Positions 16,141-53,710 of a DNA stretch of 64,000 nt are shown here, one piece after another. Each line of letters starts with the position of its first letter. Position 1 is the first letter of the stretch. The stretch lies in assembly GCA_051530055.1 (NCBI GenBank), contig CM121342.1, positions 4,463,489-4,527,488 on the forward strand, given 5' to 3'. The notes beneath the pieces were generated by a model. That model had not been told where the DNA came from. It did not search any database and saw nothing but the letters and a program-made list of their open reading frames with translations. Origin of the DNA: Neoechinorhynchus agilis. Taxonomy: Eukaryota > Animalia > Acanthocephala. The position numbers and the translations under genes are program-made.

Positions 16141-16243
16141 TTTCGATGGCTGTATCCGTCGATAGTTTCAATAAATAGTTTTTTGGCATTCATTTGTAAA
16201 AAACTTTAGAACGGGTATTTCGTGTTCTAAAATTCAATTTTGA

Positions 16244-23550: not shown

Positions 23551-24055
23551 ATGGCGGCTGAACGAAGGCTTCGTAAGGAATTGATGGGTTTCATGACTGA
23601 TCCTCCATCGGGGATGAGCATCGATACGGATGCCGTAGAACGAAACATTTACTTATGGCTCATAAAAGTGAAAGGAGCATCGGGGACGTTATTTGAAGGC
23701 GAAGAGTTCATTCTAAAGTTCGTATTTTCTCATCAATATCCATTCGAAGCACCGTCGGTTCTCTTCACCGGAGACAGTGTTCCGATGCATCCTCATATCT
23801 ACTCAAACGGACACATTTGTTTATCCATTCTGTATTCGTATTGGTCGTAGTCGGGGTTGGGCGCCTAAAACGATCAATGCCATCTACGATGATTGGTCGC
23901 CGGCATTGTCCGTCGAATCTGTGTGTATGAGCATTCTCAGTATGCTCTCATCGTGCAAAGAAAAAGCTCGACCGCCGGACGATAAACTTTATGTAGCCAG
24001 ATCATCCGGTGATCCGAGACAAACACGATGGTGGTTCCATGACACTTCTGTATGA
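23551..24055 (+). CDS. UBE2W: Ubiquitin-conjugating enzyme E2 W, two exons split by a non-canonical intron
   Basis: HPHIYSNGHICLSILY plus DDWSPALSVESVCMSILSMLSSCKEK...WWFHD. Removing 23836-23887 restores the UBE2W signature. Confidence 0.9.
23836..23887 (+). other. Non-canonical hairpin intron in UBE2W (TC..AC, or TT..TA if shifted by 1 nt)
   Basis: 52-nt insertion between ILY and DDW. An 11-bp stem forms between 23838-23848 and 23870-23880 with two G.U pairs. No GT-AG pair gives the clean junction. Confidence 0.75.
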
Positions 24056-24182
24056 GAGCGAGAGACTACTTGTACGAGTGAGTCCTTAGATAAAAATATA
24101 CGGTCTCTCGGTCTTTTTCTATTTTTGTTCAAATTAAATACGAACATTTTTACCAGCATCGGAATTTTGAGCTTTGATTAGG

Positions 24183-25661
24183 AGACTTTTCGTCATGAAG
24201 AAAAAGCCCTAGACGATTTGGACAGTTTTCCTTTTTAAAAAAGTCCAAGATTTCTACCCAGAATGGGAACAAAGTTATCCGAAAAAAAAAGAGGTTAATT
24301 CGAATCGTAATTTTTTTTCAACCGATCAACAATTACGCCAAGTCTTTCATTATAACGAGACTTTTTAGGGGAGGAAAAGCGTTGAACAATTTGGACAGTT
24401 TTCCTTTTTAAAGTCCAAGATTTCTACCCAGAATGGGAACAAAGTTATCCAAAAAAAAGAGAGGTTAATTCGAATCGTAATTTTTTTTCAACCGATCAAC
24501 AATTACGCCAAGTCTTTCATTATAACGATACTTTTCGTCATCAAGAAAAAGCGCTGGACGATTTGGACCGTTTAACGCCCGAGATTTCTATGCCAAATGG
24601 GAACAAAGTTATCCGAAAAAAAGAGAGGTTAATTCGAATTGTAATTTTTTTTCAAACCGAAAAACAATTACGCCAAGTCTTTCATTATAACGATACTTTT
24701 CGTCATGAAGAAAAAGCGCTGGACGATTTGGACCGTTTAACGCCCGAGATTTCTATGCCAAATCTGAACAAAGTTATCCAAAAAAAAGGGGTTAATTCGA
24801 ATCGTAATTTTTTCAATCCGATCAACAATTACGCCAAGTCTTTCATTATAACGAGACTTTTGGGGAGGAAAAGCGTTGAACAATTTGGACCGTTTTCGGT
24901 TTAACGCCCGAGATTTCTATGCCAAATGGGAACAAAGTTATCCGAAAAAAAGAGAGGTTAATTCGAATTGTAATTTTTTTCAAACCGAAAAACAATTACG
25001 CCAAGTCTTTCATTATAACGATACTTTTCGTCATGAAGAAAAAGCGCTGGACGATTTGGACCGTTTAACGCCCGAGATTTCTATGCCAAATCTGAACAAA
25101 GTTATCAAAAAAAGGGGTTAATTCGAATCGTAATTTTTTCAATCCGATCAACAATTACGCCAAGTCTTTCATTATAACGAGACTTTTTAGGGGAGGAAAA
25201 GCGTTGAACAATTTGGACCGTTTTCGGTTTAACGCCCGAGATTTCTATGCCAAATGGGAACAAAGTTATCCGAAAAAAAGAGAGGTTAATTCGAATTGTA
25301 ATTTTTTTTCAAACCGAAAAACAATTACGCCAAGTCTTTCATTATAACGATACTTTTCGTCATGAAGAAAAAGCGCTGGACGATTTGGACCGTTTAACGC
25401 CCGAGATTTCTATGCCAAATGGGAACAAAGTTATCAAAAAAAGGGGTTAATTCGAATCGTAATTTTTTCAATCCGATCAACAATTACGCCAAGTCTTTCA
25501 TTATAACGAGACTTTTTAGGGGAGGAAAAGCGTTGAACAATTTGGACCGTTTTCGGTTTAACGCCCGAGATTTCTATGCCAAATGGGAACAAAGTTATCC
25601 GAAAAAAAGAGAGGTTAATTCGAATTGTAATTTTTTTTCAAACCGAAAAACAATTACGCCA
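24183..25661. repeat. Tandem array of two diverged subunits of about 160-175 bp, mostly alternating (period about 330 bp)
   Basis: A-type (CGTCATGAAGAAAAAGCGCTGGACG) and B-type (TAGGGGAGGAAAAGCGTTGAAC) subunits in the order A,B,A,A,B,A,B,A,B. Confidence 0.93.
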
Positions 25662-26186
25662 AATCTCCTTTATTATGAAATCCTTTGAGGACATTAGTAC
25701 GTTCCTTCGGCATATAATCTTTATACTCAACAATCACAGACCTTGTTTTCAACGACCTCGGCTAAGTGAAAAGTGAAACTCGTTCGATATATTTAGGACA
25801 GTCAGTGGTGAAGTTCATATTCGTGCTTTGTGCTTAAAGCGAATTCAGACGTGTTTTTTATTGTATATTTTACTGAAAATCTTTTTTTTCATATAAAAAA
25901 GTGTAGAGCACTAACAGCCAAATTGTATGAGCGTGATACGGTCAAAAATTGAACAACTCTCATGTATTATTCTTTAAAGATCGAGATTTAGGTTTCTCAT
26001 GTTTCTACTTCACTGCCAAACGGTTTCAAAGTTTTTTCTAGAGTACGAAACTCCTCGCTTATCACTCCACACACACAAAAAAATGACCCATGCATTAAAG
26101 TTGTCAATTGACTCGAAAACAAACTAGACTTCTCGTTTGGTATATTCTTAAAAGAGTTGAATACGTCTCCGTTATCGCATAAAAAG

Positions 26187-26609
26187 ATGGCCAAATGCTG
26201 CGGATTTTTCAAATCCAAGACGTCCGCGTTCGTATCGACGATAAGTGCGATCATCACGTTGGGTGGATTGTTTATCATCACCGTACCGTTCATCGAATGG
26301 CGTCATTTAAATGGATCAGTGAAGTTTTACCGATATTTCGTTGAACCTACTCTCGGCCTCTTCGAATTCATTTTCGGTATATTCTCAAATGTTGTTCAAC
26401 GAAAATGGAACAAGTTTAAGAAACTGATTTTCATGATCAGCGGTGCAGTCACAACGGGTATTTCACTCGGTTATTATGGATGGATGTTGTCTAGCACTTG
26501 GATGCCGGAATCAAATGCAATTCTGGCCATTCGTATCTGTAGCGAGATTCTATTCGTTCTTAATGCTGCAGTATTGTTTTTGGTACTACGTGCATTTTTC
26601 AAGGGATAA
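26187..26609 (+). CDS. Small multi-pass (about 4 TM) membrane protein
   Basis: ATG at 26187 and four hydrophobic stretches. No family recognised. Confidence 0.55.
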   Translation: MAKCCGFFKSKTSAFVSTISAIITLGGLFIITVPFIEWRHLNGSVKFYRYFVEPTLGLFEFIFGIFSNVVQRKWNKFKKLIFMISGAVTTGISLGYYGWMLSSTWMPESNAILAIRICSEILFVLNAAVLFLVLRAFFKG

Positions 26610-26889
26610 TCATGATTCCAAAATAAATGCTTTTTTGACCAAAATCCCGGCGGCTAAAGTGCTCTTTGTTCTTTATTACTTTTACAGAAGCATCATAAAT
26701 GTAAGTCCTTTAAAACCAGGACTTTCCAATGGGTCCGTGAAGCTGCCTTCTTTGGAACGACTAATTTATATTTTTCTTGAAATGTTCGGATGTGAAGCCT
26801 CTATAAGAATCCTGTCAAGTTTTTCAATTTTTTTTGATTCGTAAATTCTTTTATTTTACTATTTCGTTTTTCATTCTTGTAAACATCCC

Positions 26890-28750
26890 GACGTTGCCAG
26901 TATACTGGCAGCGTTCCCTAGCTCGTTGAGCGAGGAAATTTCTCAAGCGCGGTTCCCCCCGTCATCCTCTTCGTCCCAAATCGTCGAGGAAATTGAGCGC
27001 TGATGGTCCCAAGGCTCCATGCGTTTCCACGGCAAAAGGCACCAAAGTTTATATATTGTTAGGTCTCACTTTCCTTAATAGTATCGAAGAAACAGTAATG
27101 AGCAACGAATTTATTTTTTTTACTTCTCTATTTCACATTGTGACTTTCTAAGAACTGTTTCGATCGGTATCAGAGGAATCAAGCGACAACACTAATGTGT
27201 CGGGTTTGAAGTATTTCCCAGTTAATTGCTTCGAAAATTGAGAAGAGGAAGACAGTATTTGTTAATAAAATTCCTATGATAATAGGTTTTTAATAACAAA
27301 AACTAACGAAAACACTTTGGTAGTAGAAAAACTGTTAATCGATTTCGCTATTTTAACACAATCTATATCACGTCAGCAGTTACCGCAGCGATAGAATGTC
27401 GGTACCCCAAGTCTCAGGGACACTGCAATCCTTACTGTCTTGTCGGCGAGTACCCACAGAAGCGATTGGATAGCGTTGAACCAAGCACCCGATTTTCTTG
27501 TCGAGACTGCCGCCAATCGAGTTCGGTTCACCAGGTCACGAGAATCTGAAATTAAAGAGTTATGAATTCTCGCTACCCGGGGGGAGTCCCAAAAAGGATT
27601 GTTTGCAACCGTTGACTGGTACCTGCTCGCTGCCCGAATCTCCACACCAAAGATTAGGCGTCTCCACGAAATCTTCATCCAAAATGTAATTCTCGCCAAT
27701 AAATGAATGAACCATTCTATGGCTTGCTTCATTCGATCCCAAATAAGCTGGTAGAGAAATATCGGCTATATTTCGGATAAATAAACCGCCGGACGACACA
27801 GGCAAGGACGCTTGACGCCTTCACCGTCTCGTCTAATTTTGCCAGCGGAATGAAGAGGATGTTCTTGATCAGGAACAGAGTTTCGTGTAAAGATAATTCA
27901 TCAATTCGTTCACATAGCACCGAAAGTTGCGGTTGAAGATTGGCAATCTCTGCTTCAACATTAGAATCAAAAATACAGCTTAATAGAAGACTCAACCGGT
28001 CTGGAGTGATCAATTCTATCCCGGGGGCCAGGTTCTGAAAATCGTTCACGGTAGCTTGCCTGGACGCTCCACGTCCATCACTAAAATCTCGCATTTCGCA
28101 GCATTCAATTAAATGAAAAATTTTCTGTCTCCTTCACGAGAGGTTACCCCAGAGCTTGACATCATCCAAGTAAGAGCCCTTAAAGATGGATTGGAGAGTG
28201 CGCGACGGGATTGACTGCGAATGAGAAGGCTTTTGGGCCCAAAGGTTCTCCTTGTTGAAATCCTGTTTCTGACAACGAAACGAGGTCATTGAACAACAAG
28301 GGAGTTGCAATACGAAATAGCGATATACTTCTGATGTGTGATCTCTGACTTTTTCGAGAAAATCTGCTCGGTGAACTGTGCTGAATGCATTTTTGAAATC
28401 ACATTTCAAGATCACGCACGGCTTTGAGTTTCCGGTGATGATCGTGTGTACAGCAGCCTAACTGAGTAGGCCGAAGCAGTTTCCTTACTTTTTCCGAGAT
28501 CCTTTTATTTAAAATTTTTACTATTAAGCGGTGCAGAGTTGTTCTAATTGCAATGGGACGAATCCAACCTTCCTTTTTCTGCGGGTAAACACAAAGATGC
28601 GCCGAAAAATAGCTCAATTGCTTTCGGAATCAACTCTCCCCCTGCGAATTGGTCGACTAAGCGTGCCAATGCATCTTCAAGGGACTAGACAGCGTCACTT
28701 ACTGAAAAGATAGTCACATCCTTTAGGCGCTGGGGCCTGAGTCCGTCAAA
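26890..28750 (-). mobile_element. Degenerate CRE-like non-LTR retrotransposon (RT plus REL endonuclease tail)
   Basis: GWIRPIAI, ILKCDFKNAFSTVHR, LPVSSGGLFIR, SGAWFNAI..RIAVSLRLG and VPFAVETHGALG..GNAASIL occur in the correct order, with stops, frameshifts and an unrelated AT-rich block at about 27050-27370. Confidence 0.85.
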
Positions 28751-29804
28751 CCCTTTAGCTGATCCGTTAGAAAATGTTGAGTTTGTCATCTTCAATTCTG
28801 ATTTTGATGATAAAACATAAGGAATCGTATCGAAGGAGGAGGATTTAACGACAAACTGCCGACCCGGACGAAAGACAATCGCAAACCAATAGATCAATGG
28901 TGGAAAATAACAGCAACGATACAAGTAAATTGAGTGCTTGAACCTGAAAAGCAACAAAATCAACGTTTATTTGCCGCAACACAATATAAACGATTACGAA
29001 GAATTATGAAACTGTGCATAAAGGCCAAAGGCGTGTAATTTGCTCAAAGCATTCGAGTTCAAAACAACAACAACAACGTCAATAGTGGAACAATCAATAA
29101 AGAAGAAAAGACGATTTAATCGACGTTTAACCGTCCTTGAGCATGTCTCTTGCCCTAAAAAACTTTAAAACATCTTTATCCTCCATTGCCTCGAGGATCC
29201 AGGATTTCCTTTTTCAATTGTTGTTTCTCTGATAAAAATTAGAATATTTTCCAAGAGCAAGTCTCGCGCTCGAATATACTTTCGTTTACGGATCAACATT
29301 TTCGTTACTTTATTCGCCTTTCGTTGCATAAAAACAACAAGGATTTGTATGAAGGTTCAAAAAGAACAAAGAAATATTCTTGTTTCATTTGCCTGAAGCA
29401 CTGTTAAGACTCCACGATATAACAATTAAGATTGAAAGTCAATTGATAAGTCTCTGAATCATTAAGATCAACGAACCTTTTAAATAAGCTCTATATTGGT
29501 GCCATTATGATGATCAATAGGCTGGAAAGATCCAGAGTCAAATGGAAACAGCATTCCTTGATTTAGATGGTCATATTGATCGTCTTTAACAGACTCTTCC
29601 TTCACCGACACTAAGGTCCTTTGATGCAGATGCCTCCGGGTGAGATGAGCATCAAATGTTGAGTTTAAAATCTTGGTTTATTATTTCTTCGTAGATTTCC
29701 AGCACTGTAGAAGGACGAGCTTGAGTTATAAATACAGTTGACTTTAGGATTAATCAAACCACATCGGGACGTGACCGTTTTAGCCGGTTACATTTATTCT
29801 GTGT

Positions 29805-30267
29805 TGAAGTGAAAGCCTTTTTCACGGCTGATCGTTTTCCTTAGGCATCATGGGATTGATTAATTATAACGCATTTTATTCAAAGTAGAGAAACTATGTC
29901 CTTCTCTGGGTCCTTCTCGTGAGCACTCGAGTTCTGATTTGTCAAACGAATGCGGTTGGTTATTTTGAGGAGGATTACGGGTTCGGTCGAATGGGAATTG
30001 GTGGTTATTGTTTATGGGAGATTTATTTGATTTTGGTTGGTTAAGTTCCGCCGAATCAATTCGCATTTGGAGGATTGAGCATTGGGGAAAAAGAGCGAAG
30101 GTATCACTTAAACTCTGTACAAAGGAAGGAAACTCACTGATGGCTATCGTCTCCTGGGGATGTATCTGAGAATCCGGACGGGGATGTAAATGGTTCCCTG
30201 ATCCAAGATATCGGTGGACTGTGTGCCTAAGAAAAATGATCAGCAGTGAAAAAAGGCTTTCACTTCA
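29805..30267. mobile_element. MITE-like element, 463 bp, with imperfect terminal inverted repeats of about 44 bp
   Basis: Left TGAAGTGAAAGCCTTTTTTCACGGCTGATCGTTTTCCTTAGGCA pairs with right TGCCTAAGAAAAATGATCAGCAGTGAAAAAAGGCTTTCACTTCA. No clear TSD. Confidence 0.65.
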
Positions 30268-30308
30268 TATATTTAGAATTTGGTTTTAATAAGTGGCATC
30301 GGATTTGA

Positions 30309-31416
30309 CTATATTTGCTTTTTAAAACCATATGAGAAACGGTTGAACACCGCCGGTCTAAACGAATCACACATATTCACACAAACCAACTTCTTCGTCC
30401 AATAGAGATGATATATAGGAGACAGCGAGAAAGTTTTAATTAAAGCTAGGTTATTTTTTTTATAAATAACGTGCTCCACGCCAAGTTGCGACAACAGGAT
30501 AGGACGACGAAATAGCTCCAATCCATGTATCACCGGCTAGTTGTTGCATCATTTCGATCAGCATTCTACTGATGCCATTGAGAGACGACCCGCCTCCAAC
30601 TATGAAGATTGTTGAATATAGTTCATCTTTCACATCGGATGGACATGATTCAATCACATTGTAACATACCTCATGAAGCCCAGGAAGATATTTTCCAACG
30701 ATATTCGGCTCAAAATAGGCTTCCCGTGACAAAACAATGCTTTCGCCTAAGATGTCTTGAATTCCATTCAAATCAAAGTTGTCCACTTGGTCCAAGAACT
30801 TCTGCAGATCGTAAGATTGCTTCATTTCATCTACTTCCTGATGTAAGAAATACTCACCGGATTGGCTGAGAAGATCTTTTATATAAGCTGTAATGTGATA
30901 CCCGCCAATAGGGAAAAAGTACGCTAAGTTAAGAGATGGATTTCCAGAAATTATCGGAGTTACTTGAGTGCATCTATCGCCGAAATCGACTACCAAGGTA
31001 TTCAATAGTCCACTTGATGCTGCAGCACACCCGGGCTGGCTTAAGAATCGATATGTGTCCACATTTACGTCACATTTGTTAATAATCGATACTATTTGCT
31101 CGCGATCCTCTTCGTTCGAGAAGATAGGCTCAGCGATAGTTACATCGCATCGATCGTTGTCAACGTTCAAATGGTTTTGAAAAATATACCTCAGAATTTT
31201 TTCTAAGTGGTCTGAGTTTCGAATGACTCCGGCTTGGACGGGATGCAACAAATCTGCGTCGCTACGAAGTGCATCGAATCCAATAAGCCACTTTTGTTGG
31301 CTCTCGTCGAACGCTGTCACAGTTGGAAACTCCACACTCGGTTCGTCTTCGGTTGAAAATCCAGCCTTGATGTGTGAAGAGCCGATGTCAAGAATGATCT
31401 TTGGTAAATCGCTCAT
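30309..31416 (-). CDS. Divergent actin-related protein
   Basis: IILDIGSSHIKAGFS, LVVDFGDRCTQVTPI, GGYHIT, IFIVGGGSSLNG, ATWRGA. The C-terminus continues in another frame (SLSPIYHLYW...), most simply via a 25-nt GT-AG intron at 30446-30470. Confidence 0.85.
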
Positions 31417-31965
31417 TGCTTCGGATTCGGGATTGAGAATGCCGCAAAACTAGATGATGGGGGATCCAAAATTATTTACCGTCGTAAATCAGCTCCATTG
31501 CGTTATTCTCTTCCACATCAATAATGAGCGTAAATATCATGTTTTCGACGTTCCGGCAGTAGGCAACAAATGTACTAACGTGCCAATTCCTCAAGTCATT
31601 GATTATAATTGATTGGGCTTTCCTTTAAAATGTTAAACAATGAACTTGTTTAAGTAAACAGAGTAGATCATATAGTTTTTTTAGGATGGTATTTTTGAGA
31701 GAAAACAACAAATGCCTTGAATTATGAATTTTAATGTGTCAACTTTCCAGTCAATCCAAACCTTTTTTAAACATTCGCTCAAACTGCCATTATGCTCTTA
31801 AGTGAGTTTTTTTGCTATGTTTAAATGGCTTTAAATAGTACTTTAAAATAAATTCAAAAAAAATTCATAGAGCTTCATTGGTGCATGAAGCCGGACGACT
31901 TGGTTTATAAATTTACAAACACAAAACAGAATTTCTTTTAACTTTCAACGTACTAACAGGGCACA

Positions 31966-33681
31966 TTAGTAAAACAGAAAGAGAGTTGATCTAAGCATCG
32001 GAATAGCTGAGACTATACCACTCAGAGCACCGATTAATCCAAGTACAGCAATGGATATCGGCAGAGCGATTGTGAGCGATCGAAACATGGACGCTTGTGG
32101 ATTCTGTGTGGAGGGTTTCTGTTGTTCACGACACCTTTGCTCAATAGAACTGCGATTGACGCATCGATATCCGAATTCCTTTCCGCATGTAATCAAACCT
32201 TCCTTGCAATCTAAATGAAACAGTAATCTTCTAGAAGTGACACTACACATTTCATTGATACCATAGTATTCATTTGAATTCATGCAGAGAATTCTCTTGG
32301 TGCTTTGTGGATTCACACATCCTAAAGGAACATCCGTCTTGTTTGTACAATCATCAACGTCTACCTTAAATCCGTTAGCTACAATTTCTTTAAGTTTATC
32401 TCACCGCATGGATCGCTGGACAATGAACACTTTTCACACAGTTTTCGCATACTGGTACATTTGCTGTCCAAATGATTTCCAACACGAATATCAGAGGGAA
32501 TTGTCGTATTCCCACATCGGTATTCCTCTTAAAAAGAAATAGAGCAAGTTTTTAGAGCCTTGATTTGGAATCAAACCAGTAAAACTCGCCGAAGATTTTT
32601 TACGGAAAAATGGGATCAAAATTCGATTCAGGCTCGTTTCTTTGTGAATGCATCAATTTTTTTATAGCAAATTTTTGGCATGATTCCTTTGGATCAAATC
32701 GTTCGATCGTAAATGCATATCAACTTTCTCCAAACAAAATGAATGATTTTCTTTAAGTTTGAAGATTGAACTGTTCATATTTTTGTTTTTTTATGGTGAA
32801 GAAATGAAATGATGATTTTGGTTTTTAAACTGTTGATTGTTAACCAATTTTCTTAAAAGTATTCGTTGGCCTAATATCTAAACCGAAACGTTCGTTTTGT
32901 GTGGGATATGAACAACTGGAGTTGTAGTCAAGAATAGAAAAATTTGAAAGCGATATTTCGCGAGCAAGCCTAAATTCAAAGCTCCGAGAAACATTTTTTC
33001 ATAAACTGAAACGTTCGTTTTGTGTGGAATGTGAATAATTGTAGTTGTAGTTATCGTATTTTCTGCCTAAATAGGTAATACGATCACCACAATTCTACCA
33101 TCCCGAAGGATTTTCTCTCTCTTTACGATCTTATTTGTTTTAGAAAAACTAATTTTTTAAATTATAAAAACTTACCACATACGTCTCTAGGAACTTGAAT
33201 ATTTGAAATTGTGTTTGGATGCGGACACATTTCTAAAGAATTGACGAGCGGCACATCAGCGATGTCTAAACTAATGTCATGAGTCCGAAAACAAAATGAT
33301 TACTAACATTGGTTTTGTGTTGCCAATGCGCACAGTTCCGTTCTGTTCAAACATTTTCCATTACAAAGCACTGAATTTTGGTCGCAACCTTTTTTTAAAG
33401 ATTTTATCAACCCAAAAAAATTCGGTGGATTTTGAAGGCTTACATGCAAATCGCCGTAGGGCGCATGTCGGTCCTGAAGGACATGGAACAAAAACATAAT
33501 CCAGATCGCATCCTGGTGAACCAACTACTAAATCTTCTATTGGAGACGAGAATGTGACTGGTTTTTTCTATAAACGGTAGCTTACTGCAAAAACTTCCAC
33601 AAGTCGCACACAATTTCGCTATATCTCTGCACATAACTCCGTCTCCTGATTGGTTACAGTAAAGATATCCATCAGGGCAAC
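31966..33681 (-). CDS. Multi-exon cysteine-rich single-pass membrane protein (5' end not found)
   Basis: Cys-rich exons (GCPDGYLYCNQ, GCDQNSVLCNGKC, RCGNTT) joined by canonical donors and acceptors, including a 26-nt intron at 32379-32404. C-terminal TM LTIALPISIAVLGLIGAL. Confidence 0.6.
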
Positions 33682-36600: not shown

Positions 36601-37339
36601 TGAGTCGAATCATGCCCATTGGTGGCATTCCGAATAAGTTTAAATGTTCTTTGTTCTCATTCAACCGCTTTTCGAGTGCACGAACCGCTCCTTGCGGCAC
36701 AAAATCAAAAGACGTAACTTGGCTATCATTTAAGTCAGAGAAGTAAGCTCTCCAAATTCCGCAAAAGGGTATTCGTTCTCTGAAGCATTGGGCTAATCAC
36801 CATCGCCAGGAAATGAGATAATCGATACGCAAGTCCATTGACTGTCGAAATTGATCAGTCACAGCCGGTCACGTTTTACAATTTGACCATTGGATACATC
36901 CCGAGCACCCGCAACGATCCATGTGCCCGAAGCCACTCATTCCTTTAAAATCTCTTGCAGTTATCAATTCACGAAAGATGCTGTTCAACTTAATGCGCTT
37001 CAATTCTCAATCGTCCTTCTATTCCGCCATATATGTAGCGAGATCTCTCAGTAATTCCTCCATCTCATGATCTCTTCTACACCTTCATCGATCGGAATTA
37101 AGTCACCATTTTTGTCAGAACATTTTCAGAGGATCTATTCAGTTGATGTGGTTTTCTATGACAAAATGAGGTGTAACAGGCACCTTTTTTCAATCCTCTA
37201 GATTTCATCTCTCCGTTGGATAATATTCTTAGAATTGACGAGATTTAAAATTCTAGCGAAGATTTCGGTAGTGTGGTCGTCGAAATGGAATTCTCCAGCG
37301 TGACAAAGGAAGCCTTGATTGGGAGGTGTTATATAGATA

Positions 37340-37830
37340 TCGAGCCAAAACTGGACGCATCAGGTGCAAGCAAAGTGTTGCCACTGCTCCAACACCGACC
37401 AGGGAATTCACGGCCTTGACTGCAAGCGTTCAAATTCTCGCCACGTAAGGCACTCAAAGGAAGCCCTCTCAACGGCCGGTTTTCCCGCTCGACTCGGACC
37501 AGTCGGACTATCCCGGAACGACGATAAACGCCCTGATGGTCCGGGAAAATACTCGTTTGGGATTTTACCTGCCCCAACACGCTCGCAGCATCCCAGTTAC
37601 GGGATGCCACTTCAAAGGCGGGAGCAGTCGCCAGCTTCAGCAAGGAAAAGAAGCTGCATAAATATTCCTCGCTCGATGGGCATCGATATGTATTCATCCT
37701 CGGAAACTAAGCCGATTATTTCCTTTTTCCCGACTGAGAAAGATGCCACCGGCGACATGCGCTCCAGCAGTTTCCTGATGCAGCGAATCAGCGCGGCGAT
37801 CAAGGAAGCTGCCGACCAATTATAACGTAT
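37340..37830 (+). mobile_element. CRE-like retrotransposon C-terminal remnant (zinc knuckle / REL domain)
   Basis: HGLDCKRSNSRHVRH..ALSTAGFPARLGPVGLSRNDDKRPDG and FLMQRISAAI. Confidence 0.75.
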
Positions 37831-38088
37831 GGGTAATGCGGATTCTCTCTTTCGAATGAAGTTTCCTAAAGCGCTAAAAAAGCAAACAATTTGACTGATC
37901 TCACCTTTTTAAAACCCATCGCACTTTCGATTGATTGTCAATCGTGTTTGTATCAAAATCCATCGATTTGAAAGTTGTCTAAATTCATGAATGAACCCGT
38001 TGATCACATTGTTTACGAAAGACAAGAAGTCGACTTAAATTTAACCGAAAAATCCTAGTTTTTTAATTTTAACAACAACAAACGCGAT

Positions 38089-40399
38089 ATGCTGAACTCT
38101 CCGCAATGGTACAGGATTTGCGGTTCAATTGAGGCGCATTCGAGCGACATTCGATGTGTGAGGTCGTTGCCTGATGCTCAACAGTCAATCTTTTTCACTG
38201 GTGGTCGCGATGGATTGGTTTGCAAATGGGTATTGAACCCGGAAACTCTGGAATTAACGTCTGATTGCATTGTGACTGAGCATTTGAATCGTTACATAAA
38301 CGCCGTTGCGGTGATCGATGACGGACAAGAACACTCGCAGACGATTGTGGTTATTGGTGGTAACGAAAACACCGTTGAAGGATACGGTCCAAAATGTGAG
38401 AAAGTGTTCACTCTTGAAGACCAAAAGGATACGATTTGCCATTTGAACTATTCATCGGGCACAAAACTCCTCACGAGCTGTTCATACGATCAAAGTCTAT
38501 GCATTTACGACGCTACTGACCGAAGAAATCCACGATTATTGGAGAAATTCTCCTATAATGATGATTGTGTTTGGTGCAGTGAATTTGTGGGCAATGTCCT
38601 CTTAGGAGGAACGTCGAATGGATCGATAGGTATTTGGAGATTATCAGATGAACATCATATTAGTTTTGATCAATTTTTATGTTCAATTCACTCGGATTGT
38701 GTCCGGGCGATTTGTGTGTTAAATGACAAGCAAAGGGCTGCGACGGCGTCCAATGATAAAACAATCGTTATCCTTAATTTGGAATCATTGGCAGTTGTCC
38801 ATCGACTTGAAGGCCATGAGCACAATATTTTCGATCTGATTGCGATTCATGACGATAGTGGCGAAAGCCTTGTGAGTGCCGGCGAAGATCATACCTTAAG
38901 AATATGGAGTACGGAGTTGGGAAAGGAAAAGCAAATTGTTCATTTGCCGGTAACGACCTGTTGGAGTCTTGCTTTCAGTAGATCGATATTAATGGCCGCT
39001 TGCAGTGACGGTATTTTAAGGATCATAGCTGAACGAAAACCTGAATCGCCTGATCTGGATAATGAATTTTTAAGTTTTGTGATGAACGCTCCGCGATTCG
39101 ACCGTAAAGGAATGCACGATCGACCCATAGGAAGGGGCCGGTTACAAGGAGATTATCAATATGTCATGGAATTGAATAGAGACGCTCCATTGACCATTGC
39201 ACAAATCCGTAGTCAAGTTAATCAGCTTAAAGGGTTCTTGAATTCCTTTCGGTTAAAAAAGCTGATTGTGCTTGTTTCGAGACGACTACTGGTCCCGCGT
39301 TTGTATCTTTTTAAAGTACGAATGGAAAAACGATCAATGGCGTCGTGTTGGTCGGTGCGTAAAATCCAAAGAGTTGCTTGATGAGGCGTTTGTGAGTGTA
39401 GACACTGAATGTTCAGATCAATTACATAGACTGAGGTTTAAGAAAGACGAGGATCCACATGAGGTTGCTAATCGATTTTTGACCGAAAACGAACTTCCTT
39501 TAAATTGCACTTCTCAAATCGTAGAGTTTGTTCAAAAACAGTGGCCTCAACATATGACCAGTATCGTTCCTTCAATGACTTATTTGAGTTTTACATCGAT
39601 GGAAGTCTGGAGAGAGATTGAACGTCTGCGAGTGGACACAAAACAGCCCAATGTACCAACGGACGCATTCATGACCACACGTGAACTAGATCAATTGGAC
39701 AAGGATCTCGAGAAAATGCGTGATCAGATGAATTGGAAGCCACAGGACGTAAACAAGATCCTGGATCGACTCATGTTCATCTGTAAAAGGTTCCCAGTGG
39801 AATACGTTTATCCGGCAATGGACGTTATTCGATGGATTCTGGTATGTGCTCCGTTTGACGTCCGGTATTGGGACCGCTTTTGCGATCTAAATCAAACCTT
39901 AAAAGCGAGGTATTTAAATGAAAACGTTCTAAACGGGATTGTATTTTTAAGAATAATATGCAATATGTTCCTTACTCCTAACGGAATCGATATCTTTGTG
40001 GAACATGCGGATTCTATTCTTGATGTGGCATACAACATTTACGATGACTGTATCGATGATATCAGAATGATCAATACGTTCATTTCCGTGTTCTATAACT
40101 ATTGTCTGTTTCATTATAAAACGGGAAACGGAGGAAAACGACTTCGATTGTTTATTGAAAAAGTAGATATTGGTGACGTAAGGACATGGAAAATGCTTTC
40201 TATAATCCTGTACATAAAAGGATACGCAACTGTACTTCTCGCACCTTATGAATCGATCGGCCTTACCAAAGAACCACTTCTAAAATTATGCTCCTCGATT
40301 CTTGAGGCGCGAGAATGGGAGAAAGGCTTAGATGATGTGCCACATCATTTGGGCGTTTTAAAAAAGACTCTTTGTGCCGTCCTTGAGAAATTTTTATAA
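38089..40399 (+). CDS. PLAA: Phospholipase A-2-activating protein / Doa1 (WD40-PFU-PUL)
   Basis: N-terminal WD40 repeats, KYEWKNDQWRRVG, PFU-like DEDPHEVANRFLTENEL and PUL-like YPAMDVIR. The frame change is best explained by a 70-nt intron at 39212-39281. Confidence 0.8.
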
Positions 40400-40616
40400 A
40401 ATTCCGGTATCTAAAGGGGCGTGTGCTTCAAACAACAAAAAGATGTAGAAATACACCGCAAATGACAGAGTCCACAGAATCGAATGACAGAGATTTAGCT
40501 AAAAAAAGAGTATTCCGAGATCAAAAAACAATCACAATTCCTTTCTCGATGATTAAACTGATTAATCTGTGCATTAGAGATTACCCTAAACGCTAGGTCC
40601 GATTGATTTTGGAGGC

Positions 40617-43567
40617 TTAAAAGAATGTATTGATTCCAGAGGCGCAATCTTTTATGCCTTTTGATCGAGGTTAATTATTAATTTAAAAATTTTGATTTAT
40701 ATAAAAACATAATTTAATCTTCAAACTTAATCTCACTTACCAATAAAAGACATGAAAAATTAAAAGAATGTATTGATTTCAGAGGCGCAATCTTTTATGC
40801 CTTTTGATCGAGGTTAATTATTAATTTAAAAATTTTGATTCATATAAAAACATAATTTAATCTTCAAACTTAATCTCACTTACCAATAAAAGACATGAAA
40901 AATTAAAAGAATGTATTGATTTCAGAGGCGCAATCTTTTATGCCTTTTGATCGAGGTTAATTATTAGTTTAAAAATTTTGATTCATATAAAAACATAATT
41001 TAATCTTCAAACTTAATCTCACTTACCAATAAAAGACATGAAAAATTAAAAGAATGTATTGATTTCAGAGGCGAATCTTTTATGCCTTTTGATCGAGGTT
41101 AATTATTATTTTAAAAATTTTATTCATATAAAAACATAATTTAATCTTCAAACTTAATCTCACTTACCAATAAAAGACATGAAAAATTAAAAGAATGTAT
41201 TGATTTCAGAGGCGCAATCTTTTATGCCTTTTGATCGAGGTTAATTATTAATTTAAAAATTTTATTCATATAAAAACATAATTTAATCTTCAAACTTAAT
41301 CTCACTTACCAATAAAAGACATGAAAAATTAAAAGAATGTATTGATTTCAGAGGCGCAATCTTTTATGCCTTTTGATCGAGGTTAATTATTAGTTTAAAA
41401 ATTTTGATTCATATAAAAACATAATTTAATCTTCAAACTTAATCTCACTTACCAATAAAAGACATGAAAAATTAAAAGAATGTATTGATTTCAGAGGCGC
41501 AATCTTTTATGCCTTTTGATCGAGGTTAATTATTAATTTAAAAATTTTGATTCATATAAAAACATAATTTAATCTTCAAACTTAATCTCACTTACCAATA
41601 AAAGACATGAAAAATTAAAAGAATGTATTGATTTCAGAGGCGCAATCTTTTATGCCTTTTGATCGAGGTTAATTATTAATTTAAAAATTTTGATTCATAT
41701 AAAAACATAATTTAATCTTCAAACTTAATCTCACTTACCAATAAAAGACATGAAAAATTAAAAGAATGTATTGATTTCAGAGGCGCAATCTTTTATGCCT
41801 TTTGATCGAGGTTAATTATTAATTTAAAAATTTTGATTCATATAAAAACATAATTTAATCTTCAAACTTAATCTCACTTACCAATAAAAGACATGAAAAA
41901 TTAAAAGAATGTATTGATTTCAGAGGCGCAATCTTTTATGCCTTTTGATCGAGGTTAATTATTAATTTAAAAATTTTGATTCATATAAAAACATAATTTA
42001 ATCTTCAAACTTAATCTCACTTACCAATAAAAGACATGAAAAATTAAAAGAATGTATTGATTTCAGAGGCGCAATCTTTTATGCCTTTTGATCGAGGTTA
42101 ATTATTAATTTAAAAATTTTGATTCATATAAAAACATAATTTAATCTTCAAACTTAATCTCACTTACCAATAAAAGACATGAAAAATTAAAAGAATGTAT
42201 TGATTTCAGAGGCGCAATCTTTTATGCCTTTTGATCGAGGTTAATTATTAATTTAAAAATTTTGATTCATATAAAAACATAATTTAATCTTCAAACTTAA
42301 TCTCACTTACCAATAAAAGACATGAAAAATTAAAAGAATGTATTGATTTCAGAGGCGCAATCTTTTATGCCTTTTGATCGAGGTTAATTATTAATTTAAA
42401 AATTTTGATTCATATAAAAACATAATTTAATCTTCAAACTTAATCTCACTTACCAATAAAAGACATGAAAAATTAAAAGAATGTATTGATTTCAGAGGCG
42501 CAATCTTTTATGCCTTTTGATCGAGGTTAATTATTAATTTAAAAATTTTGATTCATATAAAAACATAATTTAATCTTCAAACTTAATCTCACTTACCAAT
42601 AAAAGACATGAAAAATTAAAAGAATGTATTGATTTCAGAGGCGCAATCTTTTATGCCTTTTGATCGAGGTTAATTATTAATTTAAAAATTTTGATTCATA
42701 TAAAAACATAATTTAATCTTCAAACTTAATCTCACTTACCAATAAAAGACATGAAAAATTAAAAGAATGTATTGATTTCAGAGGCGCAATCTTTTATACC
42801 TTTTGATCGAGGTTAATTATTAATTTAAAAATTTTGATTCATATAAAAACTAATTTAATCTTCAAACTTAATCTCACTTACCAATAAAAGACATGAAAAA
42901 TTAAAAGAATGTATTGATTTCAGAGGCGCAATCTTTTATACCTTTTGATCGAGGTTAATTATTAATTTAAAAATTTTGATTCATATAAAAACATAATTTA
43001 ATCTTCAAACTTAATCTCACTTACCAATAAAAGACATGAAAAATTAAAAGAATGTATTGATTTCAGAGGCGCAATCTTTTATACCTTTTGATCGAGGTTA
43101 ATTATTAATTTAAAAATTTTGATTTATATAAAAACATAATTTAATCTTCAAACTTAATCTCACTTACCAATAAAAGACATGAAAAATTAAAAGAATGTAT
43201 TGATTTCAGAGGCGCAATCTTTTATGCCTTTTGATCGAGGTTAATTATTAATTTAAAAATTTTGATTCATATAAAAACATAATTTAATCTTCAAACTTAA
43301 TCTCACTTACCAATAAAAGACATGAAAAATTAAAAGAATGTATTGATTTCAGAGGCGCAATCTTTTATGCCTTTTGATCGAGGTAAGTTATTAATTTAAA
43401 AATTTTGATTCGTATAAAAACATAATTTAATCTTCAAACTTAATTTCACTTACCAATAAAAGACATGAAAAATTAAAAGAATGTATTGATTTCAGAGGCG
43501 TAATCTTTTATGCCTTTTGATCGAGGTTAATTATTAATTTAAAAATTTTGATTCATATAAAAACATA
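40617..43567. repeat. Very homogeneous AT-rich tandem array, 143-bp unit, about 20.6 copies
   Basis: AAAAGAATGTATTG starts at 40619, 40762, 40905 and onward. Central copies are essentially identical. Confidence 0.98.
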
Positions 43568-43628
43568 AAAAATCCTTCCCCCTGGCTAAATGCTTAGACA
43601 GTAAAACAAATGTAATGGTTGTCGTTCT

Positions 43629-46615
43629 TCAGACGGGTACTACAACTTTGTCTGCAACGATCTCAAGCAGCTCTGGGCACTTTTTCTTCCAATTCTTCAC
43701 ATCTTTACTAACGGTGCACCATTCGATTCCATGCCGCGGTTCGGCTTTAACACACGCTTCCTTCACTCGGGCCTGGCTCTGTTCATCACCATGAATAATC
43801 TCGAATTTAAGCATGTGAGCATAGGCGTCCCCGAAATCACTGTTTAACCGGATACATTTGTCGAACCAATCTCTAGCTTTATCGATAGAAAGTTTGCTCC
43901 AGAAAAAGCGAGCAAGTGCAAGTAACACAACAGGATCGTCTTCGCAGTACTTCATTGCGTCCACGCATTTCGTTTTTCGTTTACTTTCAGTTTCCATAAA
44001 AATGGCTTCTGCTCGTAAAATGCCAGAATGTGGACAATCTTGAATAGCTCTGGCCAAAAGACTGTCAGCGTAGTGACGATTTCCTGAACGGATTTCCATA
44101 CGAACAGACTCGAGCCACAGTTCCGGACACTTGGGATTCGAAATACGAGCCCGTTCAAGACTTGCTCTCGCTCGAATCACTTTTCCGGTGTAACGCTCGT
44201 CATTTCTGGCATTTAAACGAAATGCCCTCAAATGTGTGTGAGAAGGGAGTTTGTTCGATTAAGATGAAATCTCATTGAAGATGTGACCCACAGCCCATTA
44301 GAGGATATTCCATTCCTTAGAGAATATAAAGAGGTACACAATGAGGACAATGTTTAATTCCGGACGCAAACGCTTGCCCGGCATCGGTGAATTTCTCCAT
44401 TATTTGCAAAATTTGCCCTTTCATCATCCATAACTTTGCGAATAAGGGAAATTTAGACAATCCTTGGTCGACGTGTTCCAATGCTCGCTCAAGCTCTCCT
44501 AAACACCACTCCAATTTGGCGGCCTTCATAAAAACTCGACCAGTCGGTGCACTTTTACCCGCTTTTTCAAGTAATTTCCTCGCTCGTTCATGCTCATGGT
44601 TTTCGCTTTCGAGTTTTACAGCAGCAAGCCATATTTCCTCTGAATTAGGATTTGCTGAAAATGCGTTAGCCAATACCTTACGTGCGTTCGTTACATCATT
44701 GGCGATCCATTTCGATTTAGCCAGCATTAGCCAAAGGACTTCTGAGTCAGAGCAATGAGTGACGGCTTGGGCGAGCAAACACTCGAGAGCTTCTCTATCG
44801 TTCTGAGAACGTTCAAAATAAGCAGCCTCAAGCCAAAGATCGAGTCGTTTAGGGTGCTTAGCTAAAGCTAACGCGAAAATTCGACGAGCACATTCTGGAG
44901 CTCCTTCATTGGCACATGTATTCGCATCCTCAAGCCACGTCTCAACCTCGTCCTCATCACTTTCTATTCCAATGGTTGCTACGACGTTAATAATCGATCT
45001 CGCAGTCTGAAGACATTCTGTCTTTTCTACATCCATCGCGTCTTGTAGCCATTGATCTCGATTAATCACAACCATATTGGCTTTCAAGGACGCAACCGCT
45101 CGGTCAATTATCTTATCGACCATCTTAAGATTCCCGTGAGCTTCTTCTAATTTTGCTGCCATGAACCATATTTGCCGATCTGTAGGGATATTCTCACGAG
45201 CTCTATTAAGAACAGATTTGGCCTTCTCGTAGGTTTCTAGTCTCGCCAAAGCCAACCAAAGGTCAACGGATGTTGGGCAGCAAGTTACAGCTCGTGAAAG
45301 CATTATCCGAGCGTCGGATTCGTTCTCAAGTTCAACCGCAGTTTTCCAAAGTTTAACTGAATCAGGAACCGATTCCAGTGCACGGCGAAGAACGCGCTTT
45401 TTTGACTTTAGATCCATTTCTAAATCTGTAGCTTTAGATCAGGCATCGGCAACAAATATCCCATTGACAGAAAAGAGAGAGAAAATGGTTGTTCAATTGT
45501 AAACATAAAACTGAAATCAAAGTGTTGCCGACTCCCTGGGAATTAATCCACAACCTTACAGATTGTGGAAGATTCTGAACGGCCTCTACTATAATCTTCT
45601 TACTTGCTTCCTTCGGCATTAGTCGAATTGCTTCCATCCAAACGTCCTCACTTTTCGGGCACATTTCAGTGCCTTTCATTATGAGAACTCGACTAGCCTG
45701 AACCTTACCTACAACCTCCTCTAACCTAGCACTTGCAATCCAAGCTGGTCCATGTGAAGGATTCGTCTCCCTGACTGACTTTAGAAGCAATCTTGCCTTC
45801 TTAACATCACTTATATCTCCACTGTACTGAGGAAGCATTGACTGAAGGTTAGTTAGGTACCCTTTCGGATCAACAACTGTTTGACCAGTCACTGAATCAC
45901 TGACTTGATTAAGCTTCATGTCCATTAACGTATTCCGAGCTTCTCCGATTCTCTTCATATCGATGTCATCAATAGAAGTCCTAGTTCCATCAATTGGATG
46001 AACGACAGGACGAGTATTGTGCATAATCAACAAAGTATCAGGGACGGGCGTGAACTTCTCAGCTCGGGGATTTCGTTGTCGTTTATCTCGACTATCTCCC
46101 ACCTCAGGAATACTCAACCATTCATCATAACTAACATTGGCCAGTTTTCGTTTTAAATCACTTAACTGTTGTTGAATCTTTGGACGCTCCTGTCGGAATT
46201 TCTCTACTTCTTCCCTGAACCTACGTTCACGACGATCTTTCCGCTGTTCATCCATCCGACGATCGATCCCATCGTACACTGAATCAGCCTCCTCGTCGTC
46301 CTTTTCGTAAGGATCGTTTTTAAATAGACTACCGCCGTAACCGAACTCTTCGTCAAAATTAGCATCGTTCAAGTCTTCGTCGTCATCGTCAATTGGAGGC
46401 GGTTCGTCACCTGACGGACCCGGTGGTCGCTTCCTAAGCGTAAAAGCATGCCGTTCATCAGTAACATCACCTGATTCGCGAGCTGGACCAATATCCGAAC
46501 GAGTTGTAAACCCAGTGGCACCACGACCTAAGCCAGGAACGTATCCGAGCGGTGCAGGCATTCCAATGAACGCCTTTTTCTTTTTATTCATCAAATACGC
46601 CGATGTTGTCGACAT
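43629..46615 (-). CDS. PRPF6: Pre-mRNA processing factor 6 (U5-102K), three exons split by two non-canonical introns
   Basis: [41 protein letters not shown] repeats and C-terminal [18 protein letters not shown] at 46615; introns at about 45434-45542 and about 44213-44318. Confidence 0.95.
44213..44318 (-). other. Non-canonical hairpin intron 2 of PRPF6 (106 nt; AA..AA, AG..AA or TA..TA depending on register)
   Basis: Interrupts PLYIL|(Y/N)[16 protein letters not shown] and contains stops. There is no GT or GC donor between PLYIL and the in-frame TAA. Stem GGAATATCCTCTAATG / CATTTGAGGGCATTTC. Confidence 0.8.
45434..45542 (-). other. Non-canonical hairpin intron 1 of PRPF6 (109 nt; TT..AA, flanked by a TAA direct repeat)
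   Basis: Removal gives [26 protein letters not shown]. Arms CAGGGAGTCGGCAACA / TGTTGCCGATGCCTG. Confidence 0.75.
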
Positions 46616-47109
46616 ATCTAAAATGATTTCTGAAACAAAAAATGGAAAAAAATTCAGCCGTCTATATATTAAGGAATACTGAAACATTTTGTTGCTTTTA
46701 AGTTGCTTGTCGAAATACTTGAAAGTTAAGCAACACCGATTAAACCAGAGTCATTTTAAAAAATTCCATTGTTTTGTATTCTTTTTTCCAACAATCTCTC
46801 GAGGGTTCATAAGCGACCTAAACAACAACAAAAACTAACAACAAACCGAATATAATCGTCAATAATGCAAAAATGTTAAACATTTACAAAAATTCAAAAA
46901 TGGGAACATCTACATCTTTCATTAACAAAAAGGAGTTAACCTTAACACAAAATCGTATTTCAACCAAATCTAATAAAAAAACCCTAAAGCACATAGACCC
47001 TAAGCATAAAAGATGATCAAACCAAAAATTATGATATTTCCAATGATCAATGGATGAATTTTTTAAGTAAAATCAAAACGATTCTTCCGTGAACGAATGA
47101 ACGAATCAC

Positions 47110-52698: not shown

Positions 52699-53710
52699 AT
52701 CTGAAAGCGAAATCTCATATATTTAATATAAAAGTGATGAAACATTAGGACGTGGGAATATGATTATTTACAAATGCAGAAATTAGTTCGAAATTTCGTT
52801 GCGTTGAATGATGTTTCCGATTTAGTCGGGCTTTGTAGTCTGTAATACAAAACAGGATCAAACCAAACGGATTTGCGGATTCGAAAACGTTGTAAAAACT
52901 TTATGCCCCAAGGAAAATCTTACGTCGGTACGCTAAAATCACTGGAACTCGATTTTTCGATTCACATGGACTAGTGAAACATCGATCAGAGGAGTAACCT
53001 TCTAGGTAAGGGATTTAAGTTTGGGCAATGATATTTGCGTTCGATAAACCTTCACCGTCTTATATCGACGAATAGCCTGATCTTTTTTTTATTAAAAAAT
53101 GGAAAAAACAAAATGGAATCAATTATTCCCAACAGGTACCATTTTCTAGCTATTCATTGTTAGCGATTAGCTTCCGTCAAGCGGAAATCGTGCTCCCGAT
53201 TTTCCGAGTCTAGAAAAAACTACCCTTGATGTTTAGTGTAGCGAGGGGTTTAAAAGAACTTAACAATGGACATAAACAAATGGGTCGTATTTTTATATAA
53301 GATAATGTGTGGAAATAAGAAAATCCGTGGGACAAATTTTCCTTGAATTTATGGAATATGACGCCGTGTTTTCATTAAATTCGTGGATAATATCGGTCCG
53401 TACGGAGATGTACACAATTCGGATGGCCTTGATGAATATCTATCAAAACAGGACCAATTGAATTACTCGAGATACATATCGAAAAAATGTTAAGACTTTC
53501 AGATCCAAAGCAAAAAAACAACAAGGATTTTCCCGAAAAACACAGAATTAAATGATTGATCAATTGCTTGAAATTTCACTCTTCTTCAATCGCGAAACTA
53601 AAATTTTTGAGCGCATTTTCGCTAATAAAGCATTTGACCAAATCGCAAAATTATTGATTTTTGATCATAGAAGCGAGTAAAACCAACATTTTCACCTTAA
53701 GAAAAACCAT

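Follow-up and report, generated by a model that had tools for sequence, protein, structure and literature searches.

To our knowledge, abundant introns without GT-AG ends are known among animals essentially from larvacean tunicates only, and in one of these, Fritillaria borealis, Henriet et al. reportedly described in 2019 non-canonical introns derived from MITEs (miniature transposable elements that carry inverted repeats). The introns of F. borealis carry inverted repeats and TAC-type direct repeats, occupy species-specific positions and need the U2-type spliceosome; the 5' end of the U1 small nuclear RNA (snRNA) is unchanged, and divergent U2AF paralogues together with altered snRNA methylation assist (PMC11282704; Soo et al. 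2026, PMC13326754). In euglenids, which are protists, nonconventional introns pair CAG with CTG at positions +4 to +6 and -8 to -6, lack a pyrimidine tract and are released as circles (PMC11282704). The present analysis concerns a window of 64,000 nucleotides (nt) from Neoechinorhynchus agilis (contig CM121342.1, assembly GCA_051530055.1, positions 4,463,489-4,527,488 of the forward strand), in which one insertion in UBE2W and two in PRPF6 are most likely to be explained as non-canonical, hairpin-bearing introns. N. agilis is an acanthocephalan, a parasitic member of the Rotifera (Syndermata). Hairpin non-canonical introns appear to be unreported in Acanthocephala so far: a full-text literature search for non-canonical introns of rotifers or acanthocephalans returned nothing relevant, and the word "intron" is absent from the main text of the N. 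agilis genome paper (PMC12690905).

Three insertions had been predicted to interrupt the frames of these two genes, and translations and gap-free alignments bear this out. In UBE2W, on the forward strand, homology to the N-terminus of a UBE2W-type E2 enzyme is lost after position 23835 and regained in another frame at 23888. Exon 1 (23551-23835) holds 95 codons ending in ...HICLSILY and was defined by translation and gap-free alignment to nine orthologues; exon 2 (23888-24055), defined in the same way by translation and orthologue alignment, runs from DDWSPALSV... to the stop codon. The 52-nt insertion between them (23836-23887) shifts the frame and contains a stop codon. Deleting it yields a UBE2W protein of 150 amino acids (aa) that aligns without any gap to nine animal orthologues, and the predicted joined junction reads ...CCATTCTGTAT/GATGATTGGTCG (or its CTGTAC and CTCTAC variants; here and below a slash marks a junction). 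In Pomphorhynchus laevis, UBE2W is a single open reading frame (ORF) of 453 nt that is intronless at this position, with the empty-site sequence TTATCCGATGATTGGTCA.

PRPF6 lies on the reverse strand. Its exon 1 (45543-46591) starts at 46591, presumably with the same start as the human protein, and ends in ...SVRLWI plus the AA of a Lys codon. Insertion 1 (45434-45542, 109 nt) separates it from exon 2 (44319-45433), and insertion 2 (44213-44318, 106 nt) separates exon 2 from exon 3 (43629-44212), which runs to the stop codon; exons 2 and 3 were delimited by alignment to orthologues. Both insertions are frameshifting and non-canonical. Their removal gives a PRPF6 of 915 aa that is 64% identical over its full length to that of Brachionus calyciflorus, its best hit, which is in keeping with an acanthocephalan source; the alignment has no gap at either junction and confirms the predicted host as PRPF6, a core protein of the tri-snRNP. 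At junction 1, predicted to join as ...GTTGTGGATTAA/AGCTACAGATTT, WIKATDLE faces WIKAADLE of Brachionus inside a block that aligns without gaps across 12 animal orthologues; at junction 2, predicted as ...TTATATTCTCT/ATGCCAGAAATG, PLYILYARN faces PLWVLYAN, with "LYA" matched. Both B. calyciflorus and a related metagenomic contig, the latter with the same Tim10-PRPF6 gene order, encode PRPF6 in a single intronless ORF. Because both genes are intronless in relatives, the inserts are probably gains in the Neoechinorhynchus lineage.

All three insert lengths are 1 mod 3, so that each shifts the frame, and the open frame meets a stop codon inside or just beyond each insert. The flanking coding sequence, 450 nt of UBE2W and 2745 nt of PRPF6 (~3.2 kb together), has no other defect, and its frames are collinear with those of the orthologues. 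These features support the view that the three segments would have to be removed for the genes to work.

The possible junctions were enumerated as all pairs of cuts up to 18 nt on either side of each junction that keep the frame and create no stop codon. Six placements of the UBE2W insert encode an identical protein, namely TC..AC and five alternatives lying 1 to 5 nt upstream of it (TT..TA, AT..CT, TA..TC, GT..AT and TG..CA). PRPF6 insertion 1 has four equivalent placements (TT..AA, AT..TA, AA..CT and TA..TC), and insertion 2 has two (AA..AA and AG..AA). The 5' ends TC, TT and AA given by the original prediction are therefore valid placements, but each is only one of six, four and two equivalents, respectively. 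Its claim that no junction restoring homology has GT-AG, GC-AG or AT-AC ends holds for all of these placements, and no in-frame GT-AG pair was found within 18 nt of any junction. In this range, the UBE2W insertion offers neither GT-AG nor GC-AG; its two AT-AC combinations both alter strictly conserved blocks, and its last 41 nt contain no AG. PRPF6 insertion 1 has no GT-AG solution and three GC-AG options, the least disruptive of which (+14/+2) swaps an invariant K for NSQGV; its few other solutions with an AG acceptor all add or delete residues in the block that is gap-free across 12 orthologues. For PRPF6 insertion 2, no in-frame solution with a GT or GC donor exists within the same distance, each AG acceptor adds or deletes residues, and a single AT-AC combination deletes conserved residues. 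Complementarity to U1 is low as well: at all allowed placements the inserts match the 9-mer CAG/GTAAGT at 0-3 of nine positions, compared with 4-8 of nine in eight validated introns of the window. Thus, none of the three inserts has the GT-AG or GC-AG ends with preserved frame and homology, or the U1 complementarity, of a conventional U2-type intron.

The inserts differ from the ordinary introns of the window in the pairing of their two ends. End pairing was measured as the duplex energy of the first against the last 30 nt and compared with 1000 dinucleotide shuffles; this test replaced z-scores of whole-sequence folds, which are not specific for end pairing. The energies were -18.4 kcal/mol for UBE2W (z -2.5, p 0.015), -23.5 kcal/mol for PRPF6 insertion 1 (z -5.0, p 0.001) and -21.0 kcal/mol for PRPF6 insertion 2 (z -4.0, p 0.003). 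Nine GT-AG introns of the window, two from an RFC small-subunit gene, six from PRPS and one from PLAA, served as controls and gave -2.1 to -7.9 kcal/mol (z -1.3 to +1.5, not significant). Strong end pairing is thus found in three of three insertions and in none of nine GT-AG introns (Fisher ~0.005), as the original prediction had proposed for the inserts. The G+C content of the inserts (0.39-0.52) also exceeds that of the validated introns (0.26-0.40, mostly ~0.31).

In minimum-energy folds, the UBE2W stem is formed by a 5' arm at 23838-23848 (GTATTGGTCGT) and a 3' arm at 23870-23880 (ACGATCAATGC), which is followed by the 7-nt tail CATCTAC. The arms of PRPF6 insertion 1 occupy 45523-45538 (CAGG..GTCGGCAACA) and 45440-45454 (TGTTGCCGAT.CCTG, then the 6-nt tail ATCTAA), and those of insertion 2 occupy 44296-44315 (GAATGGAAT.TCCTC.AATG) and 44215-44234 (CATT.GAGGG.ATTTCGTTT, 2 nt before the junction). 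The distance from the 5' junction to the stem is 2, 4 and 3 nt in UBE2W, insertion 1 and insertion 2, respectively, and that from the stem to the 3' junction is 7, 6 and 2 nt; a closing distance of 6-7 nt, proposed for all three, therefore applies to the first two and not to insertion 2. G.U pairs, expected in at least two stems, occur in all of them (three, two and five). Because of these pairs the fold of the inserts is strand-specific, and pairing is stronger in the sense than in the antisense strand (-18.4 versus -8.9 kcal/mol for UBE2W, -23.5 versus -20.8 for insertion 1 and -21.0 versus -14.0 for insertion 2). This bias fits selection on the transcript and is only suggestive, given three cases and a folding program that rewards G.U pairs. 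A blastn comparison found no sequence common to the three inserts, as predicted, and no copies of them elsewhere in the 64 kb. A scan for further hairpin cases across the window was too noisy to be informative: at -16 kcal/mol it gave 316 matches on one strand and 344 on the other, compared with ~220 when the sequence was shuffled. Both PRPF6 insertions have pyrimidine-rich tracts upstream of the 3' arm. The 6-mer ATCTA+N stands at the extreme 3' ends of the UBE2W insert (CATCTAC/, 23881-23886) and of PRPF6 insertion 1 (GATCTAA/, 45435-45440).

A full-length U1 snRNA gene (9896-10060, forward strand; Rfam RF00003, 128 bits) has the conventional 5' end ATACTTACCTG, which indicates that U1 of the major spliceosome reads 5' splice sites in N. 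agilis as usual. For eight of the nine GT-AG controls, identity of the spliced product to the official N. agilis protein provides validation; the ninth is the PLAA solution. The eight comprise the two 46-nt introns of the RFC small-subunit gene (56261-56306 and 56006-56051, reverse strand; the spliced model equals KAL7670686.1 exactly) and six introns of PRPS (61139-62747, forward strand; 52, 45, 48, 611, 45 and 48 nt; the model equals KAL7670689.1 exactly). Validated ordinary introns thus measure 45-52 nt, plus one of 611 nt; a length of mostly 25-53 nt had been claimed for them, and none of 25 nt was seen. Beyond the GT, ordinary 5' sites are degenerate (GTAAAA, GTTTAA, GTGCTT, GTTGGT, GTTCAC, GTTTGC, GTAAGC and GTCAGT). 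Read by eye, COPE has at least one GT-AG solution of ~140 nt, and a SAC1-like gene just beyond the window end has at least four interruptions readable as GT-AG. Non-canonical introns are therefore a minority, three against nine GT-AG solutions plus several in these two other genes, or about one intron in five or six on a rough count. The single interruption of PLAA was considered as a fourth non-canonical case and is not supported as such, because a GT-AG solution of 100 nt exists (39217-39316, forward strand), unusually long for this genome. This intron has a perfect 9-bp hairpin (AATCAGCTT/AAGCTGATT) directly after the donor, and the PFU-domain scores of three alternative models, 42.1 bits (GT-AG), 41.2 bits and 45.5 bits (a 115-nt CA..AG intron), are too close to decide among them.

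The borders of the inserts consist of TA-rich direct repeats (tat/TCG...CTAC/gat in UBE2W, ttaa/TTCC...CTAA/agc at PRPF6 insertion 1 and tct/AAGG...TTAA/atg at insertion 2), which resemble a target-site duplication no less than a splice signal. A relaxed "TAN" acceptor, as first proposed, is accordingly not supported: the junctions are ambiguous, and the flanking TA repeats suit target-site duplications equally well. The original argument against a transposon origin is likewise weak, given the TA(N) repeats that flank the inserts, an unrelated MITE in the window, and UBE2W arms that copy the neighbouring exon. In the UBE2W insert, the 5' arm (TCGT ATTGGTCG T) copies the first 12 nt of exon 2 (GATG ATTGGTCG) in direct orientation, whereas the 3' end (CGATCAAT gc CATC) copies these 12 nt in inverted orientation. 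The 8-mer ATTGGTCG follows both UBE2W junctions in the same register and at the same offset (23833-23901). The UBE2W insert therefore looks like a fold-back, templated insertion made during the repair of a DNA break rather than a foreign MITE; a test for local duplication reached nominal significance for UBE2W only (p ~0.02, uncorrected, 12 tests). The 3' arm of this insert could also pair with exon 2 instead, placing the 3' junction in a hairpin loop. A 9-mer spanning the 3' junction of PRPF6 insertion 1, GATCTAAAG, repeats 21 nt downstream in exon 2, and a shuffle test of this repeat was not significant.

With a probability of roughly 0.6 for the package as a whole, we favour the reading that the three inserts are recent gains, which a permissive major spliceosome removes from the pre-mRNA while the terminal stem keeps the exon ends together. 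Short insertions with inverted-repeat ends (52-109 nt) would have entered uninterrupted coding regions beside TA-rich direct repeats, recently and in the Neoechinorhynchus lineage, and would now be taken out of the pre-mRNA despite the missing GT-AG. In the transcript, the arms would pair, G.U pairs included, and leave the two exon ends only a few nucleotides apart. The exons may then be joined at non-consensus sites by a permissive major (U2-type) spliceosome. Such permissiveness is plausible because the 5' consensus of ordinary introns is itself degenerate beyond GT.

The state of the genes and of their annotation is consistent with this reading. The genome paper describes a 46.2-Mb draft assembly, a MaSuRCA hybrid of Nanopore and Illumina reads from a pool of ~50 worms, annotated by BRAKER (PMC12690905). 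At the PRPF6 locus, GenBank has three genes on the reverse strand (382 aa, 45434-46754; 231 aa, 44317-45036; 156 aa, 43629-44099), and the breaks between these models coincide exactly with the two insertions. No gene is called at the UBE2W locus (23551-24055, forward strand), and PLAA (38089-40399, forward strand) is annotated only as a C-terminal fragment of 281 aa, while the nearby RFC and PRPS genes, which have GT-AG introns, are annotated perfectly. BRAKER by default takes canonical splice sites. The annotation pattern is thus the one expected of a pipeline that accepts canonical junctions only, and by itself it is no proof of splicing. None of the 120 best PRPF6 and 120 best UBE2W protein hits (803 at E <= 1e-20) exceeds 65% identity, and no intact second copy was present among them; an annotated intact N. 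agilis copy would have ranked first because the database includes the N. agilis GenBank proteins. The arms have diverged (G.U pairs, mismatches and bulges) while the flanks stayed intact, which suggests that the genes functioned while carrying the inserts, on the assumption that the arms began as good repeats; over the time needed for such divergence, a dead gene would have accumulated frameshifts and stop codons.

Several points weigh against the favoured reading. The sample for all hairpin and junction results is three insertions in two genes, and we infer removal at the RNA level, the role of the spliceosome and that of the stem from genomic sequence. Whole-sequence minimum-energy folds with flanks give weak z-scores (-1.1 to -1.9). 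The junctions are ambiguous by up to 5 nt and therefore yield no common splice rule. At PRPF6 insertion 2, excision of the element plus one TAA removes 104 nt and loses the frame, so that the repeat is out of step with the required cut. The UBE2W stem may be a relic or by-product of the birth of the insert because its arms copy the adjacent exon. No spliced N. agilis UBE2W or PRPF6 protein was found, either by exact look-up (spliced UBE2W; exon ORFs) or by homology search with the complete PRPF6 and UBE2W, and one text supplement of the genome paper has no mention of either gene. The search for intact intron-free copies, whose existence the original prediction had named as refuting it, found none among the best protein hits; it covered annotated proteins, and an unannotated copy elsewhere in the 46-Mb genome would escape it. 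On balance, the observation behind the original prediction is confirmed, with statistical support, and its interpretation is supported in part: it is unproven that structure takes the place of the 5' splice site, that the inserts belong to a splicing system of their own defined by structure, that acceptors follow a TAN rule and that the stem is under selection.

The main alternative at the RNA level, which we consider unlikely, is a spliceosome-independent pathway in which a structure-guided cut and rejoining takes place at the stem base, a model put forward for the euglenid introns released as circles. The terminal stems lie a few nucleotides from both junctions, the insert ends are not conserved and no splice consensus is present, all of which would suit such a pathway; in PRPF6 insertion 1, the CAGG/CCTG arms near +5/-7 recall the euglenid CAG/CTG pairing (PMC11282704). 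However, the stem-to-junction offsets vary among the three inserts on both the 5' side (2, 4 and 3 nt) and the 3' side (7, 6 and 2 nt), the junctions as read from the sequence show neither an IRE1-type loop nor a bulge-helix-bulge motif, so that these two kinds of cleavage were set aside, and the sole animal precedent, Fritillaria, depends on a U2-type spliceosome. We know of no structure-guided cut-and-rejoin intron pathway in animals, which also counts against this alternative. For some inserts, splicing might instead use cryptic near-canonical or minor-spliceosome sites and yield slightly altered proteins, an explanation with only a slim chance of being correct. It could draw on the in-frame GC-AG pair at PRPF6 insertion 1 (+14/+2, NSQGV added), but its donor GCAACA is weak and residues would be added to a block that is gap-free in 12 orthologues. 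A U12-type intron was defined by the 5' motif /RTATCCTT together with the branch site TCCTTAAC at a distance of 10-26 nt from the 3' end. The GT..AT placement of UBE2W at -4 begins with GTATTCGT (6/8 to the 5' motif), and the branch-like GCCTAAAA (5/8) lies 13 nt from its 3' end; against this, the 5' site has no conserved C at +5 and there is no AG near the 3' end. A few minor introns are retained in bdelloid rotifers (PMC10639083). Both PRPF6 insertions reach at most 4/8 at the 5' site at every allowed placement and at most 5/8 at a branch site, at the wrong distance, and a U12-type reading is therefore possible for the UBE2W intron only and is a weak lead there. PRPF6 insertion 2 also holds ATATCCTC, which comes close to a perfect U12-type 5' motif. 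It lies 10 nt into the insert and, with a stop codon upstream, cannot support productive splicing.

At the DNA level, the inserts could be transposon or repair insertions that disabled these gene copies (pseudogenes or segregating null alleles), or germline-limited DNA that is cut from the soma, with mRNA made from an insert-free template. This is quite improbable, yet the inverted-repeat ends with flanking TA-type direct repeats, and the active-looking MITE with perfect 20-bp inverted repeats in the same window, point in its direction, as does the pooling of ~50 worms for the assembly (PMC12690905). It would require that two conserved genes within 64 kb took three disabling hits and that every flanking frame stayed intact; the diverged arms argue that the insertions are not brand new, and no second copy was seen among the best protein hits. 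The failure of an RNA-seq-guided annotation to bridge the inserts could also be taken in its favour, but the canonical-only default of BRAKER accounts for that failure. Precise excision of such elements from animal coding DNA is not known to have been reported, which weighs further against this explanation. A Paramecium-like excision bounded by TA was tried and fits two inserts; at PRPF6 insertion 2, it would take out 104 nt and break the frame. Ribosomal bypassing, of the kind seen in phage T4 gene 60 and in mitochondrial "byp" elements, fits UBE2W (take-off codon TAT, landing codon TAC) and fails at PRPF6 insertion 1, where the sequence offers no matching in-frame landing codon. That the inserts are artefacts of the hybrid assembly is very hard to believe: a draft made by MaSuRCA from Nanopore and Illumina reads invites the suspicion, but structured inserts of 52-109 nt are untypical of polishing errors, three independent cases share one architecture, the surrounding long ORFs are error-free and the nearby validated gene models are exact.

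Read as introns of a permissive major spliceosome, the inserts come closest to those of F. borealis. Both occur in an animal whose U1 has an unchanged 5' end, lack GT-AG ends, carry inverted repeats by which their ends can fold, sit in conserved genes at lineage-specific positions and have short border repeats of TA(Y) type. The UBE2W insert, with TAT upstream and TAC as its last triplet, even has the "YAY" signature of F. borealis. The PRPF6 inserts, unlike this YAY/TAC pattern, have TAA/TAA-type repeats, and the repeat of insertion 2 is out of frame register. N. agilis belongs to another phylum (Acanthocephala, within Rotifera), its ends are not AG/AC or AG/AT, and its non-canonical introns are a minority class, whereas ~95% of F. 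borealis introns are non-canonical. Unlike the MITE-derived introns of F. borealis, those of N. agilis show no repeated element family in the window. With the nonconventional introns of euglenids, the inserts share coexistence with conventional introns, non-consensus ends, border repeats resembling target-site duplications, a suspected MITE origin and a stable stem that joins the ends a few nucleotides from the junctions. In the placement of the original prediction, the N. agilis stems extend from +3 to -8 (UBE2W), from +5 to -7 (PRPF6 insertion 1) and from +4 to -3 (insertion 2), and CAGG/CCTG is present in PRPF6 insertion 1 only. Transposon-derived introners (Amoebophrya, Micromonas, Polarella) and the new U12 introns of Physarum are similar in their inverted repeats, target-site-like duplications and tolerance of unusual borders. 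In contrast to multi-copy introners, the N. agilis inserts are mutually unrelated and single-copy in the window, and that of UBE2W looks locally built. Mirtrons are hairpin introns that are processed into microRNAs and have normal GT-AG ends and conventional splicing. The short UBE2W insert resembles them in being one hairpin that spans nearly the whole intron, and differs in its lack of GT-AG ends.

A more speculative idea, to which we give a low probability, is that acanthocephalans have a second route of intron removal that reads RNA structure, the terminal stem setting the cuts, and that its introns arise de novo from local inverted duplications or from small structured RNAs inserted at breaks. 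The idea of a de novo origin comes from the UBE2W insert, built from its own exon, and from a faint likeness of PRPF6 insertion 2 to Y RNA. Positions 44218-44308 of insertion 2 match the Y RNA model (Rfam RF00019) over its full length at 20.2 bits (E 0.04-0.4), below the gathering threshold of 38 bits; the upper stem (GUGGGU/CCCAC-like) and the pyrimidine tract CUCCCUUC match, and the lower stem does not. This resemblance is a lead only. If removal does read structure, non-canonical splicing would have arisen a second time, independently, among animals, and part of the "gene loss" reported in these parasites would be an annotation artefact.

A second animal lineage would test whether tolerance of non-canonical introns evolves repeatedly under short palindromic insertions, and whether an end-pairing stem can replace the splice-site consensus. 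There is irony in PRPF6, itself part of the tri-snRNP core, being the host of two of the inserts. N. agilis is tractable for such work, with a small 46-Mb genome, 74 public RNA-seq libraries (PRJNA1223661) and a transcriptome on Zenodo (10.5281/zenodo.17199078). The share of complete BUSCO genes is 47% on the genome and 55% on the transcriptome; BUSCO scores and inferences of gene loss in acanthocephalans may carry some bias from introns outside the reach of standard pipelines, and the gene counts of this genome may likewise be in part an annotation artefact.

Several other features of the window were recorded. A non-coding, 133-bp MITE-like element (57554-57686) has terminal inverted repeats that are perfect over 20 bp (TATTCTCAATGGCGAATTGT), with TA at each outer end; elements of the cut-and-paste type therefore exist in N. 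agilis. A partial relative lies ~850 bp away (56677-56713), and the MITE is unrelated to the three inserts. The RFC small-subunit gene (55336-56531, reverse strand) has a partial inverted duplicate at 53700-54240 on the forward strand, 46-nt intron included, with a near-identical protein; this duplicate, a separate protein of 144 aa in GenBank, is probably a pseudogene fragment. Directly downstream of PRPF6 (~40700-43600) lies a tandem array of ~143-bp AT-rich units (27% G+C), and other tandem arrays occupy ~16200-18800, ~11000-12900 and ~24400-25700, with units of ~181 bp (with internal 23-bp inverted repeats), ~305 bp and ~329 bp. A further repeat lies within the 611-nt PRPS intron (61574-62184). 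On the reverse strand at 27300-29000, a decayed reverse-transcriptase frame similar to that of long interspersed nuclear elements retains a YLDD motif and is broken by several frameshifts.

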